From Salpingoeca rosetta (Eukaryota; Protista; Choanoflagellata): a stretch of DNA of 64,000 nt. This document shows, piece after piece, positions 2,873 through 35,836 of the stretch; within the stretch, counting starts at the first letter, position 1; every line of letters begins with the position of its first letter. The notes under the pieces are model-generated. The model worked only from the letters and a program-made list of their open reading frames with translations, made no database searches and was not told where the DNA came from. Made by a program: the position numbers and the translations under genes. Where the stretch lies: assembly GCA_033442325.1 (NCBI GenBank), contig JAWQFM010000025.1, positions 320,826 through 384,825 on the forward strand, given 5' to 3'.

Positions 2873-5800
2873 TCACCAGCGACTCCCGTGCGCTTCAGCA
2901 ATCCTTTGTAGATGAACAGACACACCATTGTGCTGGGGATCAAGCAGATTCGTGGCAACTAACTCAGTCAACGGCAGCCACACCCTCTCCTTTGTTCTTT
3001 CGTGAGGTTCGCTCGCGTTCAAGTGTGTGTCTCCGATGTTGTCGTGGCAACTTGCAAACGCGCAATCGTCTTCGAAGTGCACGTCCGACACAACGACATA
3101 TGAAGGGGAGCCGAAACACTGACGGATTTGGCGGCAAGTTCCATCCCAGGTTGCGCTCAAATCCTCGGAGACAAGAGGTAACATCATGGAAGAGTGATCG
3201 CGGAGAACAAGCACTTCAAGCGTTGGACGACCCTCCCGAGCAACGCGTCGATGAAGATGTGTCCGCTTCCATCGAGTCAGAACCAAGAATAGGGACTGTA
3301 GGCGTTGATAGGCGCCAGCCCATTTCTCTGGAAGAGTCTGGTGAACCAGCATGCGCGGGCAAAAGCAGTTTTGATGAGATTCTCGTGTTGAACATTCAAC
3401 ATGAAGCACAAGCCAACAAGCAGGACGACTCATACGCACCAACGGTGAAGCAGCGCAACAGCCACAGTTATGCCAATGCCTTTCTTCAATTGCACGCAGC
3501 ATGGCAAGGGAGGACTCCACTTGTGCTCGAGATGGGCGCAGGTCATTGTTGGCGTTGGCTGCCTGGGCCACCAAGCCAGAAAACGCAGGGCTTTGCTCCT
3601 GCAAGGCATGCTTCGCCGACCTCTCAAAATACCACAGTTCCCGATCTTCACGCATACTGCGCTCTTCAAGGATGGCATCCAGCTCTCCGGCAATCTCATT
3701 GTACCTCCGATCAATGTCAACTTCGTGGTAGCCATTGCACAAGACCATCCCCCCGCGTTCCGTGTGCGGTTCAGGATTGCGTTGCGGGACAAGTGTGTTG
3801 TTGTCGCGATAGCCATTGCACAAGACCATCCCCCCGCGTTCCGTGTGCGGTTCAGGATTGCGTTGCGGGACAAGTGTGTTGTTGTCGCGATAGCCATTGC
3901 ACAAGACCATCCCCCCGCGTTCCGTGTGCGGTTCAGGATTGCGTTGCGGGACAAGTGTGTTGTTGTCGTTAGGTTCGACTGGCTTGTCCTCTCTCCAACA
4001 GCAGTTGCAGCTCTTGCACGTCACACATGCCTTTGCAAGGAACTTGAGTGCAACGGAGACGATTGCAAGTGGCGCAAAGTATGTTCGAATTGGTTTTTTG
4101 TACTCACGAAGGAGTCCTAGAGCAAGGGTAAAACAGGGGACATCGTAATGAGTGCGCAACTCCTCAAATCAAGGAAGGCCCAAACGGCCGAGCAAATGCA
4201 ATGATTTTACCGTATCTCTGATGAGCCCAGTAGGCGTGCGCTTGAACATGGACTCGACTGTATGTGTTGTTGAACATGGCTGTTGACATGACATCAGCGT
4301 GAGTTTGGACGTCAGAAAAGTGCACAACTTAAACTGTGAACACGCCGGATGCAGCTGCGGATGTGTCAGGAACATACCCCGAGATCAATCTTACCGATGA
4401 GCATGTTCACAAGCAGAATGGTCGTGCCAAGAACGAAGAGGGCCAAGAGAAACGGCAGCATTTGGACTTCCTGTGTGTGTGTGTGTGTGTGTGTGTGTGT
4501 GTGTGTGTGTGTGTGTGTGTGTGTGTGTGTGTATTTCAAAGTGCCCAAGCACGGACATGAGAGATCCCCTTCCTCTTGTCAGAGAAGTGGGGGACTAAGA
4601 AACGCGCAATAAGTTGCACCTGCGTGGGGCAGCTCTCAAACAGCTGCGGTCCTTGGCAGCTGGCTTCGTCACTGAGATGTTCCAGGATTTGGTCGCCGTA
4701 AATTTGAAAGTACGGACGGAACAAGACGTCAATGACCTTCTGCGTCCTGTAACTTGTAAGCGGATAGAGCACCGCCTGAAAGGCGACACCAAAACCTAGC
4801 GAATTCGAGGGCGAGAATGATGTGTTTGAGAGGGTGCAGATCCAACTCACACGGCGTGAATGAGCAGAAGAAGGATAAGGCGAGCTTACCAACAAGAACG
4901 CTGACGAGGAGGGCAAGATAGATGAGGATGTCGTCTCTCATGTGCAACAGCACCGCAATCTTGGGCCCAAGGCGTGGGCACACTTTCAAGAAGCCAAGTG
5001 TGCGCAGCCACAACATAATTCCGACGAATGCGTGGATGGCTTTGGTGGCTCTCTGGGAGAATACACACAATAAACACCGTCCGGTGAGTTGATGACGAAA
5101 ACATCAAGCATGTCGCTGGAACGTGTGCAGAACATGAAAACCACAAACCACACACACCTTCGTCCCTGAATCATGGAAGTCACTGAGCCGCGTGACAAGT
5201 CCTGCAATGTACAGGGAAAAGAAGATCATTTCCACTGCATGTGGACCCCAGCAGGACTGTCGGGTCCAAAAGTATCCCCACTCTTTCCGCAGCTGCATTG
5301 TTATGAATGTTGGCACGAGTTGGCGGGAAAGAAAGATGAGCGTGTGATCAGACAATGAGGGCAGGCATCATTGAATGCTGGGTAACGTACATGGTACTGA
5401 AGTTGGTGGATCTCCTCGACGATTAAGTTTGCAAACCACACCATCAATGCAATTTCAACGCGGGACAGGTGGTCTGGCAGCTCATCCAAGAGGTAGAAGG
5501 AAAACAGGCAGCACAAGACCAAGTGCGCAAACAGCTCCATCCACAGCCTGTCACGAGCAGGGGAGAGTGCATTCAGCGTGAACACAAATGCAGAGCAAGT
5601 GCTTTGCAAGAAGCTTGCTTGCTCGTGAGGGTCGAGCCTTGATATGATAAGTACCTCACAAAAGGGGCGGTCCAGAACACGCCAAGCTTGTGACAGAGGC
5701 CTGTGTTTCTGTTGCTGCTCTTGTCGTCGTCGTTGTTGTTTGCTTGCACATGAAGCTTCCGAGACTGAGAAGGCTCTAAGAGTATGACTGGGAGAGACAA

Positions 5801-32900: not shown

Positions 32901-35836
32901 TTTGGCGGGCAGCTGGCCTATCACGTGATCCACACGCTGATGATGTCGGACAGGCTTGCCGCCTTTGTTGTCTGCGTGGACCTCTCGCAACGCGAGCAGC
33001 ACGTGAAGGAGCGCGCCAACTACTGGCTGCAGTTCATCTGCACGCGCCTGCAACAAGGGATGGCTGCCGCTGCCAACTCCATTGGCGCAGCCCCAATGAC
33101 GGAGGTGAAGCCACGCGTGATCATTGTTGGCACGAAGAAGGACCTCGCGTACAAGAACAATCTGGTGGACGCCGACGGGCATCCCACGTGGGGTAAAGCC
33201 ATGATGGCAGACCTACAGGACACGTTTGGCCATATCATCGACATCCACAGCACCCTCATTCGCTTCACGTGCTTCCTCGACAAGGGGCGAAACTTCAACG
33301 CCCTCCGCCTTGAGCTTGTGCGTCACTGGCGCTGGCTGAAGGACCGTCAGCTTGAGGTGCCAAAAGTGGTGTCAGAGGTCGCCGCCATTCTGAAGACCGC
33401 ACAACTGGAGTGCCCCCTGTGGAAAGTGGGTGACCTGCTCGAGCGCGTCCACAAGAGCAGCGAACACGAGTTTGCCGTCACCGCCGCCCTTCCCGAAAAC
33501 ATCTTTCATCTCACGTTGCGGTACGTGTTCCACGCATCCCTGCCCGCACGCAGTCGTGTTACGCATCATGTTGTTGTTGTTGTTTCAACAACGTTGCATC
33601 TTCTTGCCCCCCCCCCAACTTGTCTATGCTTTCGACACCGTACATCATCGTGCGACTTCCCCCTCCTATTGACTACTGACTCACGCAAACATGTTGCTTT
33701 TGTATGCACGCATGCAGGTATCTGCATGCACGTGGCGATCTGCTGTGGTACTACAAACTCCCGTCGCTCGCTGACGTGGTCTTCCTTTCACCCAACTGGC
33801 TCTTGCATGACGTCATGGGCAAGGCATTGCAGCCCAAAGGCGTGGCGTGTGGGGGCCTTCGGCCCAAAAGGGGCGTGGTCAGCTTCAGCGACATTTCAGC
33901 AGCGTTCGAAGGCATCGCAAGTCCCGAATTGGTCATCAGCATCCTCCAGCACGCACTCCTGTGCTTCGAGCTGCCGCAGAATGAGCGGGGCCGGCGCCGC
34001 TTCATGCTTCCGAGCCGCGTGGAAGAGGATGTCGATGTGGACAAGGAGTGGCGACAGCACGAAGATGACGATGACCATGACAACTGGGCCGTGTACGGAG
34101 GGCGCCGCCTGAAAGTGACCGACGACGCACTTGCACTCCCACCTGGGTTCTTCCCACACGTGCAGACCCGATTGCATAGCAAGTTTCGCACGCCCCCAGA
34201 CATTTGGAGGAATGCGTTTCGGTGCGAGTGGAGAGGCGTACAGTGCTTTGGCCTCCAGCGTGGTGATCGGGAGGTGGACGTATGGGTACGCGCACGTGAA
34301 GGGGCAACAACACACGCGCTTCCATGTTTGACAAAGGTAAGTTTGTTTGTTTGTTTGTGTGTGTGTGTGTGTGTGTGTGTGTGTGTGCATGTGTGTGCAT
34401 GTGTGTGCATGTGTACATGTGTGTGTGTGTGCATGTGTGCATGTGTGTGTGCTTGTGTGTGGTGCACTTATGTCTGAGCCGTGCCTGTTTATGATGCACG
34501 TCTGCCCGAACCCAAATTTTGCTCTGCCAAGCTGTGCCCCTTTAATGCACCTCTCCCCCGCTGTCTTCCAGCCCGGCTGCCTTCCAAACCCTTCCCCTCC
34601 CCCACCCCTCTTTACTTCCCTCCTCTTCGCTTCTTCTTTCACAGACAGTCCCTCTCTGCCAGTGCTCACTTCATTTCCGCTCTCTCCGTCCCCATCACCG
34701 AATGACAGGTGTTCTCACTGCTGCAGGAGGAGGCCCGTGGCATTGACAGCCATCACATTGTCCTGAGCCCAAAGCAGCTGAGGCAGCACGTGCCAAAGCC
34801 CATCGGCTATGCATTCGACGCCATACACAATCAACCGCCAAACGAATTTGTCGAGTCCTCGTACCACGACCCAGGACAGTCGGCACTGTCTGAGCGCGTG
34901 TACGACCTGCTGATGCTGCCACCCGAGCGACCCGACTCCGCCATGCCCACGTGGCAGTGCCCCGGGTATGAATGGCACCATCCAAGTTGGCGGCTCGACG
35001 ACACGCTGGATGAGCAGCTCCGCTGGTCTGGCCCGAACGCCCACCGCACGTACACGGCACCCTTGCCACCTAATACCCAACTGTACGAGTGGGTTGAAAA
35101 GCAAATGGCACCAGGAATGTCGCTGTCTCGTGTTGAGGTGACAAAGTCAGCGACCATGCTGCAATTATTCAACGGGCGCCTGGCGCAATGTGCGAGCCGG
35201 CGCGCATCCCCGAACAGCCCACACTTCAACCGCACCTTTGACTATGACCGGGACAAGAAACGCATGGTCGAGCAGCTCAAAGCTCAGTTTGCGCAGACTG
35301 GTGAAGACGTGGAGCATGTCAACGTCCTCATTGCATGGCACGGGTGCTCTGTGTCCAACATTGACGCCATGGCCAGCGAGGGGCTTGCCAACCTCAGCAA
35401 ACCTGCTGACCGCGGCTTCTATGGAGCCGGCATCTACGTGACCCCGCAGGCTGGCTACGCGGCTGGCTACTCAACCCGGCTGCTGCCTGGCACCTGGGAG
35501 GCGCCAAATTCGCGCGGAGAGCACGTGCTTTTGCTGTGTGCTGTCAGCATTGGCCTGGCGCAACCAATCACCAGGCAGGCGGATTACAACGAAGCCAGCA
35601 GGTGTAAATGGTTTGGCGAGCCAATCAAGGATGGATTTGATGCGCGGTATGTGCAGGTGTTGAGTTCCGACAACTTCCAAGCCACACCAACACCGGGCAC
35701 GTACAATTTCGAGGAAATTGTCGTGTCGCAGGAGGCCCAGGTTCTGCCCATCGCCAAGGTCTTCGTTAAGGTGAACAGGGACGAGCTTCGCGATTACCTC
35801 GCATCACCACCCCCCGCGCCAGCGCCAGCGCCTTGA
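29915..35836 (+). CDS. LRR-Roc-COR-PARP-like ADP-ribosyltransferase (ROCO-ART); 5' end and LRR/Roc junction fall in gaps
   Basis: Six 84-nt ribonuclease-inhibitor-type LRR exons (29915-31589). After the gap: Roc (GKTTMIRSL, RTPG, YDFGGQ, IVGTKKD) and COR exons 32703-33520 and 33718-34336. The last exon 34709-35836 carries IAWHGCS, GFYGAGIYVTPQAGYAAGY, LLLCAVSIG and FEEIVVSQEAQVLP. Confidence 0.82.
31722..32702. other. Assembly gap separating the LRR exons from the Roc exon
   Basis: Run of N. Other gaps: 22394-22549, 29237-29784, 35947-36046, 44264-44659, 47445-47580, 52406-52579. Confidence 0.99.

Follow-up and report, generated by a model that had tools for sequence, protein, structure and literature searches.

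Two bacterial defence systems, RADAR (the AAA+ ATPase RdrA with the deaminase RdrB) and Cad1/CAAD (an ATP deaminase fused to a CARF domain), pair or fuse an NTPase-type switch with a large deaminase of the adenosine deaminase (ADA) fold. In both cases the deaminase (RdrB or Cad1) turns ATP into ITP. Here, a stretch of 64,000 nucleotides from the choanoflagellate Salpingoeca rosetta (assembly GCA_033442325.1, contig JAWQFM010000025.1, positions 320,826 to 384,825; hereafter the window, numbered from its first letter) was analysed, in which a Roc-COR-TIR gene of the ROCO family lies directly upstream of a gene for a giant ADA-fold deaminase. A TRPM2-like channel gene follows on the same strand, and a second ROCO gene with a PARP domain lies nearby. 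These are four genuine multidomain signalling genes. We tentatively propose that the ROCO-TIR protein and the giant ADA-fold protein encoded directly downstream are the most likely functional unit of the locus, possibly a pair of switch and effector.

This pair resembles RADAR and the sensor-fused Cad1 by analogy, not by family membership. The initial annotation had likened the locus to bacterial pairs of an NTPase sensor and an adenosine deaminase, and Roc-deaminase fusions in other eukaryotes, described below, parallel that comparison. The RdrB model finds no match, and the partner in the window is a Roc GTPase rather than an AAA+ ATPase or a CARF domain, with no AAA+ gene found in Pfam scans. 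The window also differs from RADAR and Cad1 in its eukaryotic host and in the architecture of its deaminase, which carries an additional conserved C-terminal region of ∼350 residues and a poly-Asp tail.

The ROCO-TIR gene and the adjacent deaminase

The Roc-COR-TIR, deaminase and TRPM2-like channel genes form a consecutive trio on the minus strand. Their spacing had been put at about 0.75-0.8 kb, and measurement agreed: 0.79 kb separate the ROCO stop codon (15531) from the deaminase ATG (14738), and 0.75 kb separate the deaminase stop codon (10418) from the TRPM ATG (9671).

The giant deaminase gene (10418-14738, minus strand) was delineated by tblastn with its homologue P0001 from the choanoflagellate Microstomoeca roanoka, by motifs and splice sites, and by an AlphaFold2 (AF2) model. 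Exon 1 (14641-14738) starts at ATG 14738 and carries the HxH motif within DLHTHLLGNG; a small middle exon with an LVW motif, needed to keep the frame, lies within 14153-14560; and the main exon (10418-14052) comprises 1,236 codons. The main exon alone has no match in Pfam, the PDB or PADLOC. P0001, a complete transcript product, is the nearest relative of the protein, and its N-terminus aligns with exon 1. The metal-binding and catalytic set of adenosine deaminases consists of HxH, HxxE, H and D. Four motifs (HxH, RIHxAEN, GHG and TD(D/N)DG) are invariant in 14 homologues and present in the window protein, which retains the full catalytic set (exon 1 HxH, H548/E551, H602 and D679).

The AF2 model has a core pLDDT (predicted local distance difference test) of 70-90. 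Foldseek returned mostly amidohydrolase-superfamily proteins as top matches, at marginal E-values. In VIA-align, the model scored Z 13.4 against RdrB (302 residues), 13.2 against Cad1 and 12.5 against bacterial ADA, while mammalian ADA, ADAL and ADA2 each reached about Z 11. The motifs, together with Z scores of 11-13 to many ADA-family structures, place the protein in the ADA/AMP deaminase (amidohydrolase) superfamily, and the predicted ADA-type fold, as initially annotated, can be regarded as settled. RdrB and Cad1 give the best alignments, but housekeeping ADA lies within one Z unit of them, and the fold therefore does not single out a defence type over a housekeeping type.

Pfam A_deaminase was found in only 2 family members (E 3e-5 to 2e-3), and the CARF_ADA hidden Markov model (HMM) gave weak matches in 2 of 14. 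The PADLOC RdrB model matched neither the window protein nor any of the 14 family members, and membership in the RdrB family was rejected on this basis. The C-terminal domain (residues 725-1075) has no Atlas match. At the very end of the protein (10418-10800, minus strand), a run of ∼60 Asp residues sits in a longer acidic tail rich in Asp, Glu and Gly, followed by a basic stretch; this Asp-rich tail gives spurious PDB matches. In putative RNA sequencing runs, the deaminase exon is represented at 0.95-0.99 in one study, at 0.07-0.28 in two, and at 0 in others.

The Roc-COR-TIR gene (15531-20343, minus strand) was defined by Pfam matches to COR-A (55 bits), Roc (20.5 bits) and TIR_2 (17 bits) and by its splice junctions. 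Exon A (19441-20343) starts at ATG 20343 and encodes the N-terminus, a Gln-rich region and the P-loop GEGAAGKT (G1). Exon B (about 18806-18940) carries G3 (DLGGQ), and exon C (16810-18438) carries G4 (GTHAD), COR-A/B and TIR strand A, ending in HDVFLSY; exon D (15531-16476) encodes the remaining TIR domain and a long conserved tail, after which the reading frame stops. The COR-A score and the G1, G3 and G4 motifs identify a Roc-COR protein, the Roc score being that of a partial exon with the P-loop. The closest relatives of the Roc-COR exon are three S. rosetta proteins at ∼53% identity, including PTSG_09991 and PTSG_13066. The S. rosetta relative P0016 contains Roc and COR-A and has an LRR-Roc-COR architecture, LRR denoting leucine-rich repeats. 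Upstream of Roc (19441-20343), the window protein shows no recognisable repeat-type sensor, only a short globular N-terminus and the long Gln-rich region, while P0016 has LRRs. An intronic CA microsatellite (18556-18595) falls within the gene span.

The TIR domain (16044-16830, minus strand) was recognised by profile search and alignment as SARM1-like. It is split by a 333-nt intron (16477-16809) whose junction (TAC AG/gtgcgt...ag/T GCC) keeps the frame. A profile, A6, built from the window TIR and two S. rosetta homologues, matched the SARM1 TIR at E 1.8e-4, followed by Roq1, AbTIR, TIR-1 and L6; TIR domains account for 25 of the 27 other matches listed, and the two exceptions are weak (E about 1). 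Pfam TIR_2 by itself stays below threshold, both for the window (17 bits) and for its S. rosetta homologues (22-24 bits). SARM1-type NADase activity needs a catalytic glutamate. The window TIR reads LLLDW at this position, versus VLLEW in the S. rosetta homologues (the equivalence to SARM1 E642 was assigned by eye). The Roc, COR and TIR domains of the initial annotation thus stand on Pfam and profile matches, but the catalytic Glu is replaced by Asp, and a TIR of this kind is more likely to mediate oligomerisation or adaptor contacts than to cleave NAD+.

Although the SARM1 TIR is the closest match, SARM1 carries ARM repeats where the window protein has Roc-COR. The S. rosetta Roc-COR-TIR-SAM proteins PTSG_09991 and PTSG_08560, 53% identical in the Roc-COR part, combine Roc-COR with a SARM1-like TIR that retains Glu at the catalytic position, whereas the window has Asp. 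In these homologues a weak SAM-type match follows the TIR (SAM_EPH at E 0.008 in P0018, below cut-off; a SAM-like stretch by eye in P0015), the reverse of the SAM-TIR order of SARM1. No SAM domain was detected in the tail of the window ROCO-TIR protein.

Roc-deaminase fusions and the proposed pair

Searched against 1.84 billion representatives, a profile of the deaminase domain retrieved at least 502 clusters (E ≤ 1e-3). In the homologue search with the window deaminase, no match came from S. rosetta. The family is patchily distributed in opisthokonts, occurring in the choanoflagellates Microstomoeca, Didymoeca and Salpingoeca kvevrii, the sanchytrid fungus Amoeboradix gromovi, and the bdelloid rotifers Rotaria and Adineta. 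Its entries include P0001, P0036, P0105, P0006/P0008, P0020/P0168 and P0009-P0013, with many more from metagenomic eukaryotes.

A Pfam scan covered 26 long members, comprising every listed member extended by 200 or more residues at the N-terminus, plus other long ones. In five of the 26, a Roc-like GTPase precedes the deaminase: P0052 (45 bits, above cut-off), P0086 (26.9), P0062 (25.2), P0108 (25.2) and P0105 (20.6), the four below cut-off having E-values of 6e-6 to 6e-4. P0105 comes from the choanoflagellate S. kvevrii, and the contigs that carry the metagenomic fusions resemble eukaryotic DNA and include a LINE-type neighbour. One further long member has a dynamin-type GTPase, and ANK, kinase, OTU, UCH and lipase domains are the other fusion partners, a modular repertoire of effector type. 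When 104 deaminase domains are placed on a tree, Roc fusion requires four label changes, and the members that carry it fall into at least three separate clades.

In these fusions the order is Roc, then deaminase, which is the order of the two genes in the window. The ROCO-deaminase pairing is the sole link at this locus with independent support, namely from fusions in other opisthokonts. The adjacency is less likely to be pure coincidence because such fusions recur in several clades and share its order. Under this reading, the window pair would be a split form of the Roc-deaminase fusion proteins, with the ROCO protein acting as a GTP-driven switch or scaffold and the deaminase as an effector that would deaminate an adenine nucleotide, as RdrB and Cad1 do. 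A physical or regulatory coupling of the two proteins, the substrate and a role in immunity are what we infer for this pair. A more general form of the proposal, in which Roc GTPase switches of choanoflagellates and other opisthokonts, fused or adjacent, control giant ADA-fold deaminases as effectors of innate immunity or stress that corrupt the adenine-nucleotide pool, would make this an independent eukaryotic reinvention of the RADAR/Cad1 logic; in that breadth we consider it unlikely.

The rival taken most seriously, and held to be nearly as likely as the pair, is a chance neighbourhood: four independent genes brought close by a compact genome and by a large ROCO family that is locally duplicated or shuffled. 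A spacing of ∼0.8 kb is ordinary in a gene-dense genome, two unrelated Tweety-like genes interrupt the proposed cluster, and functional gene clusters are rare in eukaryotes. The initial annotation had named conserved synteny as a check, and the comparison came out negative. Nine related loci were inspected (three S. rosetta ROCO relatives, one Barroeca-like contig, and five deaminase loci from rotifers and metagenomic eukaryotes), and the neighbourhood recurs at 0 of 9. The Barroeca-like contig, and the 10 kb on either side of each S. rosetta ROCO relative, lack deaminase and TRPM homologues, and no ROCO, TIR or TRPM gene lies beside the five deaminase loci.

Several further observations weigh against a functional pair. 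The Roc domain combines fairly promiscuously with others, and this genome holds many ROCO genes; the prior for adjacency to a ROCO gene is roughly 1%, in a case that was chosen post hoc. The window deaminase falls outside the Roc-fused clades, in a choanoflagellate clade whose members, among them those of M. roanoka and Didymoeca costata, stand alone. Among the fusions, only the Roc of P0052 passes the Pfam curated cut-off. No COR was found in them: given a shallow ROCO profile, hhalign could align nothing beyond the Roc part of P0052 (probability 53%), and in local phmmer and hmmsearch runs for ROCO similarity P0052 alone matched. Against chance stand the Roc-deaminase fusions in several clades, with their domain order matching the gene order of the window, and the pair of switch and effector is retained as the tentative reading.

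The TRPM2-like channel and the ROCO-PARP gene

The initial annotation had joined all four genes into an NAD+/ADP-ribose circuit. In it, ROCO sensors would activate NAD+ consumption by TIR and PARP domains, ADP-ribose-type products would gate a channel through its SLOG and NUDT9-H domains, and the deaminase would be a second, RADAR-like effector. Its domain assignments largely hold, and every domain type it requires, NUDT9-H aside, is present.

The TRPM2-like channel gene (2873-9671, minus strand) is multi-exonic, with an approximate exon model running from ATG 9671 to the stop codon at 2873-2875. Its first coding exon (8463-9671) holds the start of the SLOG (MHR1/2) region, with Pfam LSDAT_euk at 29.1 bits (cut-off 25.7; profile positions 15-74). 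A second SLOG exon (7827-8090) bears the motif GVPVVVVKDSGG, matches LSDAT_euk at 18 bits (E 0.0016, profile positions 202-229) and aligns with residues 303-337 of the S. rosetta TRPM2 chanzyme (srTRPM2, PDB 8SR7). The transmembrane exons (4369-6074) extend from pre-S1 to S6 with the pore helix, as judged from PDB matches and from pore and S6 motifs. Within them, the open reading frame (ORF) 5304-6074 matches srTRPM2 residues 804-855 (E 1.2e-7) and the ORF 4732-5103 matches residues 897-952 (E 3.2e-6); human TRPM2, TRPM4 and TRPM8 are matched more weakly. SLOG and the TRPM transmembrane core, both of which have srTRPM2 and animal TRPM2 as their best matches, are thus in place. In srTRPM2, F268 and R275 of MHR1/2 contact ADP-ribose, and this MHR1/2 site is required for gating by ADP-ribose (10.1101/2023.03.16.533055).

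The C-terminal part of the annotation, NUDT9-H, could not be confirmed. The C-terminal ORF (2876-4168) contains three 27-residue repeats (3728-3964), a coiled coil and a tail (about 2876-3500) that is NUDT9-H-like by eye only, through the short resemblance LTRWKR...TLEVLVLRD. NUDT9-H gave no match in Pfam, in phmmer against the PDB, in Atlas features or in a search of 5.8 billion proteins, no Nudix box was found, and a single-sequence AF2 model of the tail was unusable (pLDDT 31). The channel differs from TRPM2 in having no recognisable NUDT9-H and in its inserted C-terminal repeat. In this repeat, a 27-residue unit (NNTLVPQRNPEPHTERGGMVLCNGY..) occurs three times in tandem without change, in the cytosolic part.

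The second ROCO gene lies on the plus strand, 9.6 kb past the ROCO-TIR gene and beyond the Tweety-like genes. Six 28-residue LRRs of the RI type, identified by reading the repeat units, are encoded at 29910-31605, apparently one per short exon and separated by (CA)n-rich introns. Single LRR exons have no significant Pfam match, and one of them is similar to the LRRs of S. rosetta P0016 (E 0.001). The Roc-COR-PARP part (32703-35836, plus strand) scores 28.5 bits for Roc in Pfam, and 28.2 bits for COR-A, below the cut-off of 35.3. Pfam recognises its PARP catalytic domain at 37.1 bits (cut-off 26.7). Candidates for the H-Y-E triad are AWHG at 35333, GIYV at 35429 and EEIVV at 35711, whose order and spacing fit. 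A phmmer search against the PDB returned no PARP match, just a spurious GMC oxidoreductase, and the PARP domain is therefore divergent.

An assembly gap (31722-32702) runs from an intronic (CA)n repeat on its left flank into the middle of the Roc P-loop, its right flank resuming at IGKTTMIRSL. Because this gap cuts the P-loop, the continuity and frame between LRR and Roc cannot be established, and we infer a single gene from strand, order and the LRR-Roc-COR architecture of P0016. Of the LRR-Roc-COR-ART gene annotated about 10 kb further on, the Roc and PARP domains and the distance were borne out, but the join of LRR to Roc is only putative. A second gap (29237-29784) precedes the LRR exons and conceals the 5' end of the gene.

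This second ROCO gene reflects a shuffled ROCO family, NLR-like in architecture, that has expanded both locally and across the genome. LRR-ROCO proteins with one LRR per exon have already been proposed as NLR-like receptors in brown algae (PMC11378527). The likeness lies in an expanded ROCO family, in one LRR per exon as suits exon shuffling, and in a sensor, a switch and an output arranged in NLR-like fashion; the difference lies in the outputs of the window, TIR and PARP-type, and in the choanoflagellate lineage, an immune role being a candidate function in both. To view ROCO proteins as acting like NLRs with NAD-consuming outputs is a reasonable analogy.

As a whole, the circuit nevertheless appears very improbable. 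The requirement for the MHR1/2 site in ADP-ribose gating and the closeness of the window channel to srTRPM2 speak for it, but the TIR has Asp in place of its catalytic Glu, NUDT9-H is not detectable, and two unrelated genes separate ROCO-PARP from the rest. Nor does any fusion or neighbourhood, in the loci and family members examined, tie TRPM/SLOG to ROCO, TIR, PARP or deaminase. The same points limit the comparison with Thoeris, which pairs the TIR protein ThsB with the SLOG protein ThsA. TIR and SLOG proteins are likewise encoded near each other in the window, but the homology reaches only the level of domain superfamilies, a gene lies between them, and the TIR is probably without its catalytic residue; moreover, the SLOG is of the TRPM MHR1/2 type and the TIR-SLOG pairing is not conserved. 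The TRPM2-like channel and the ROCO-PARP gene are probably bystanders.

That the Roc-COR-TIR and deaminase ORFs form one gene, through read-through or an alternatively spliced fusion, is the least probable explanation: the two lie on the same strand, 0.79 kb apart and collinear with the Roc-deaminase fusions, but the exon 1 ATG of the deaminase matches the start of the complete M. roanoka transcript homologue (MALKDIDW..DLHTHLLG) and the TIR exon has a stop codon after its long conserved tail.

Surrounding sequence and significance

The window is eukaryotic in character, with spliced genes, many intronic (CA)n microsatellites and seven N gaps. Going by the nearest relatives of its Roc-COR, deaminase and TRPM exons, it was read as DNA of a choanoflagellate other than S. 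rosetta, although the assembly record gives that name. The putative Tweety-like genes between ROCO-TIR and ROCO-PARP (22798-28518) were recognised by a weak Pfam Tweety match (E 0.009, ORF 26763-27179) and are no part of the proposed system. A further gap (22394-22549) interrupts a (CA)n microsatellite and touches none of the four focal genes. The four N gaps inspected each lie in or beside a low-complexity repeat of the (CA)n/(GT)n type, and the assembly of the window seems to break at such repeats, which are also common in introns. Downstream of ROCO-PARP, two C2H2 zinc-finger genes are encoded on the plus strand (36707-38182, an array of ∼10 fingers, and 41592-43982). Two long ORFs are without any Pfam family (38695-41529, minus strand, 945 codons; 59156-62494, plus strand, 1,113 codons).

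In a survey of choanoflagellate TIR proteins (PMC6040629), the partners of TIR are Ank, Arm, SH2 and kinase domains, and Roc-COR is not among them. The Roc-COR-TIR and LRR-Roc-COR-PARP architectures, absent from that survey, are documented here even if the neighbourhood is due to chance. If the pairing of ROCO and deaminase is functional, it would give a biochemical output to kinase-less ROCO proteins, whose functions are mostly obscure, and would define a large uncharacterised family of eukaryotic enzymes. Nucleotide deamination would then join TIR and PARP as an effector chemistry that the nearest relatives of animals have in common with bacterial defence.

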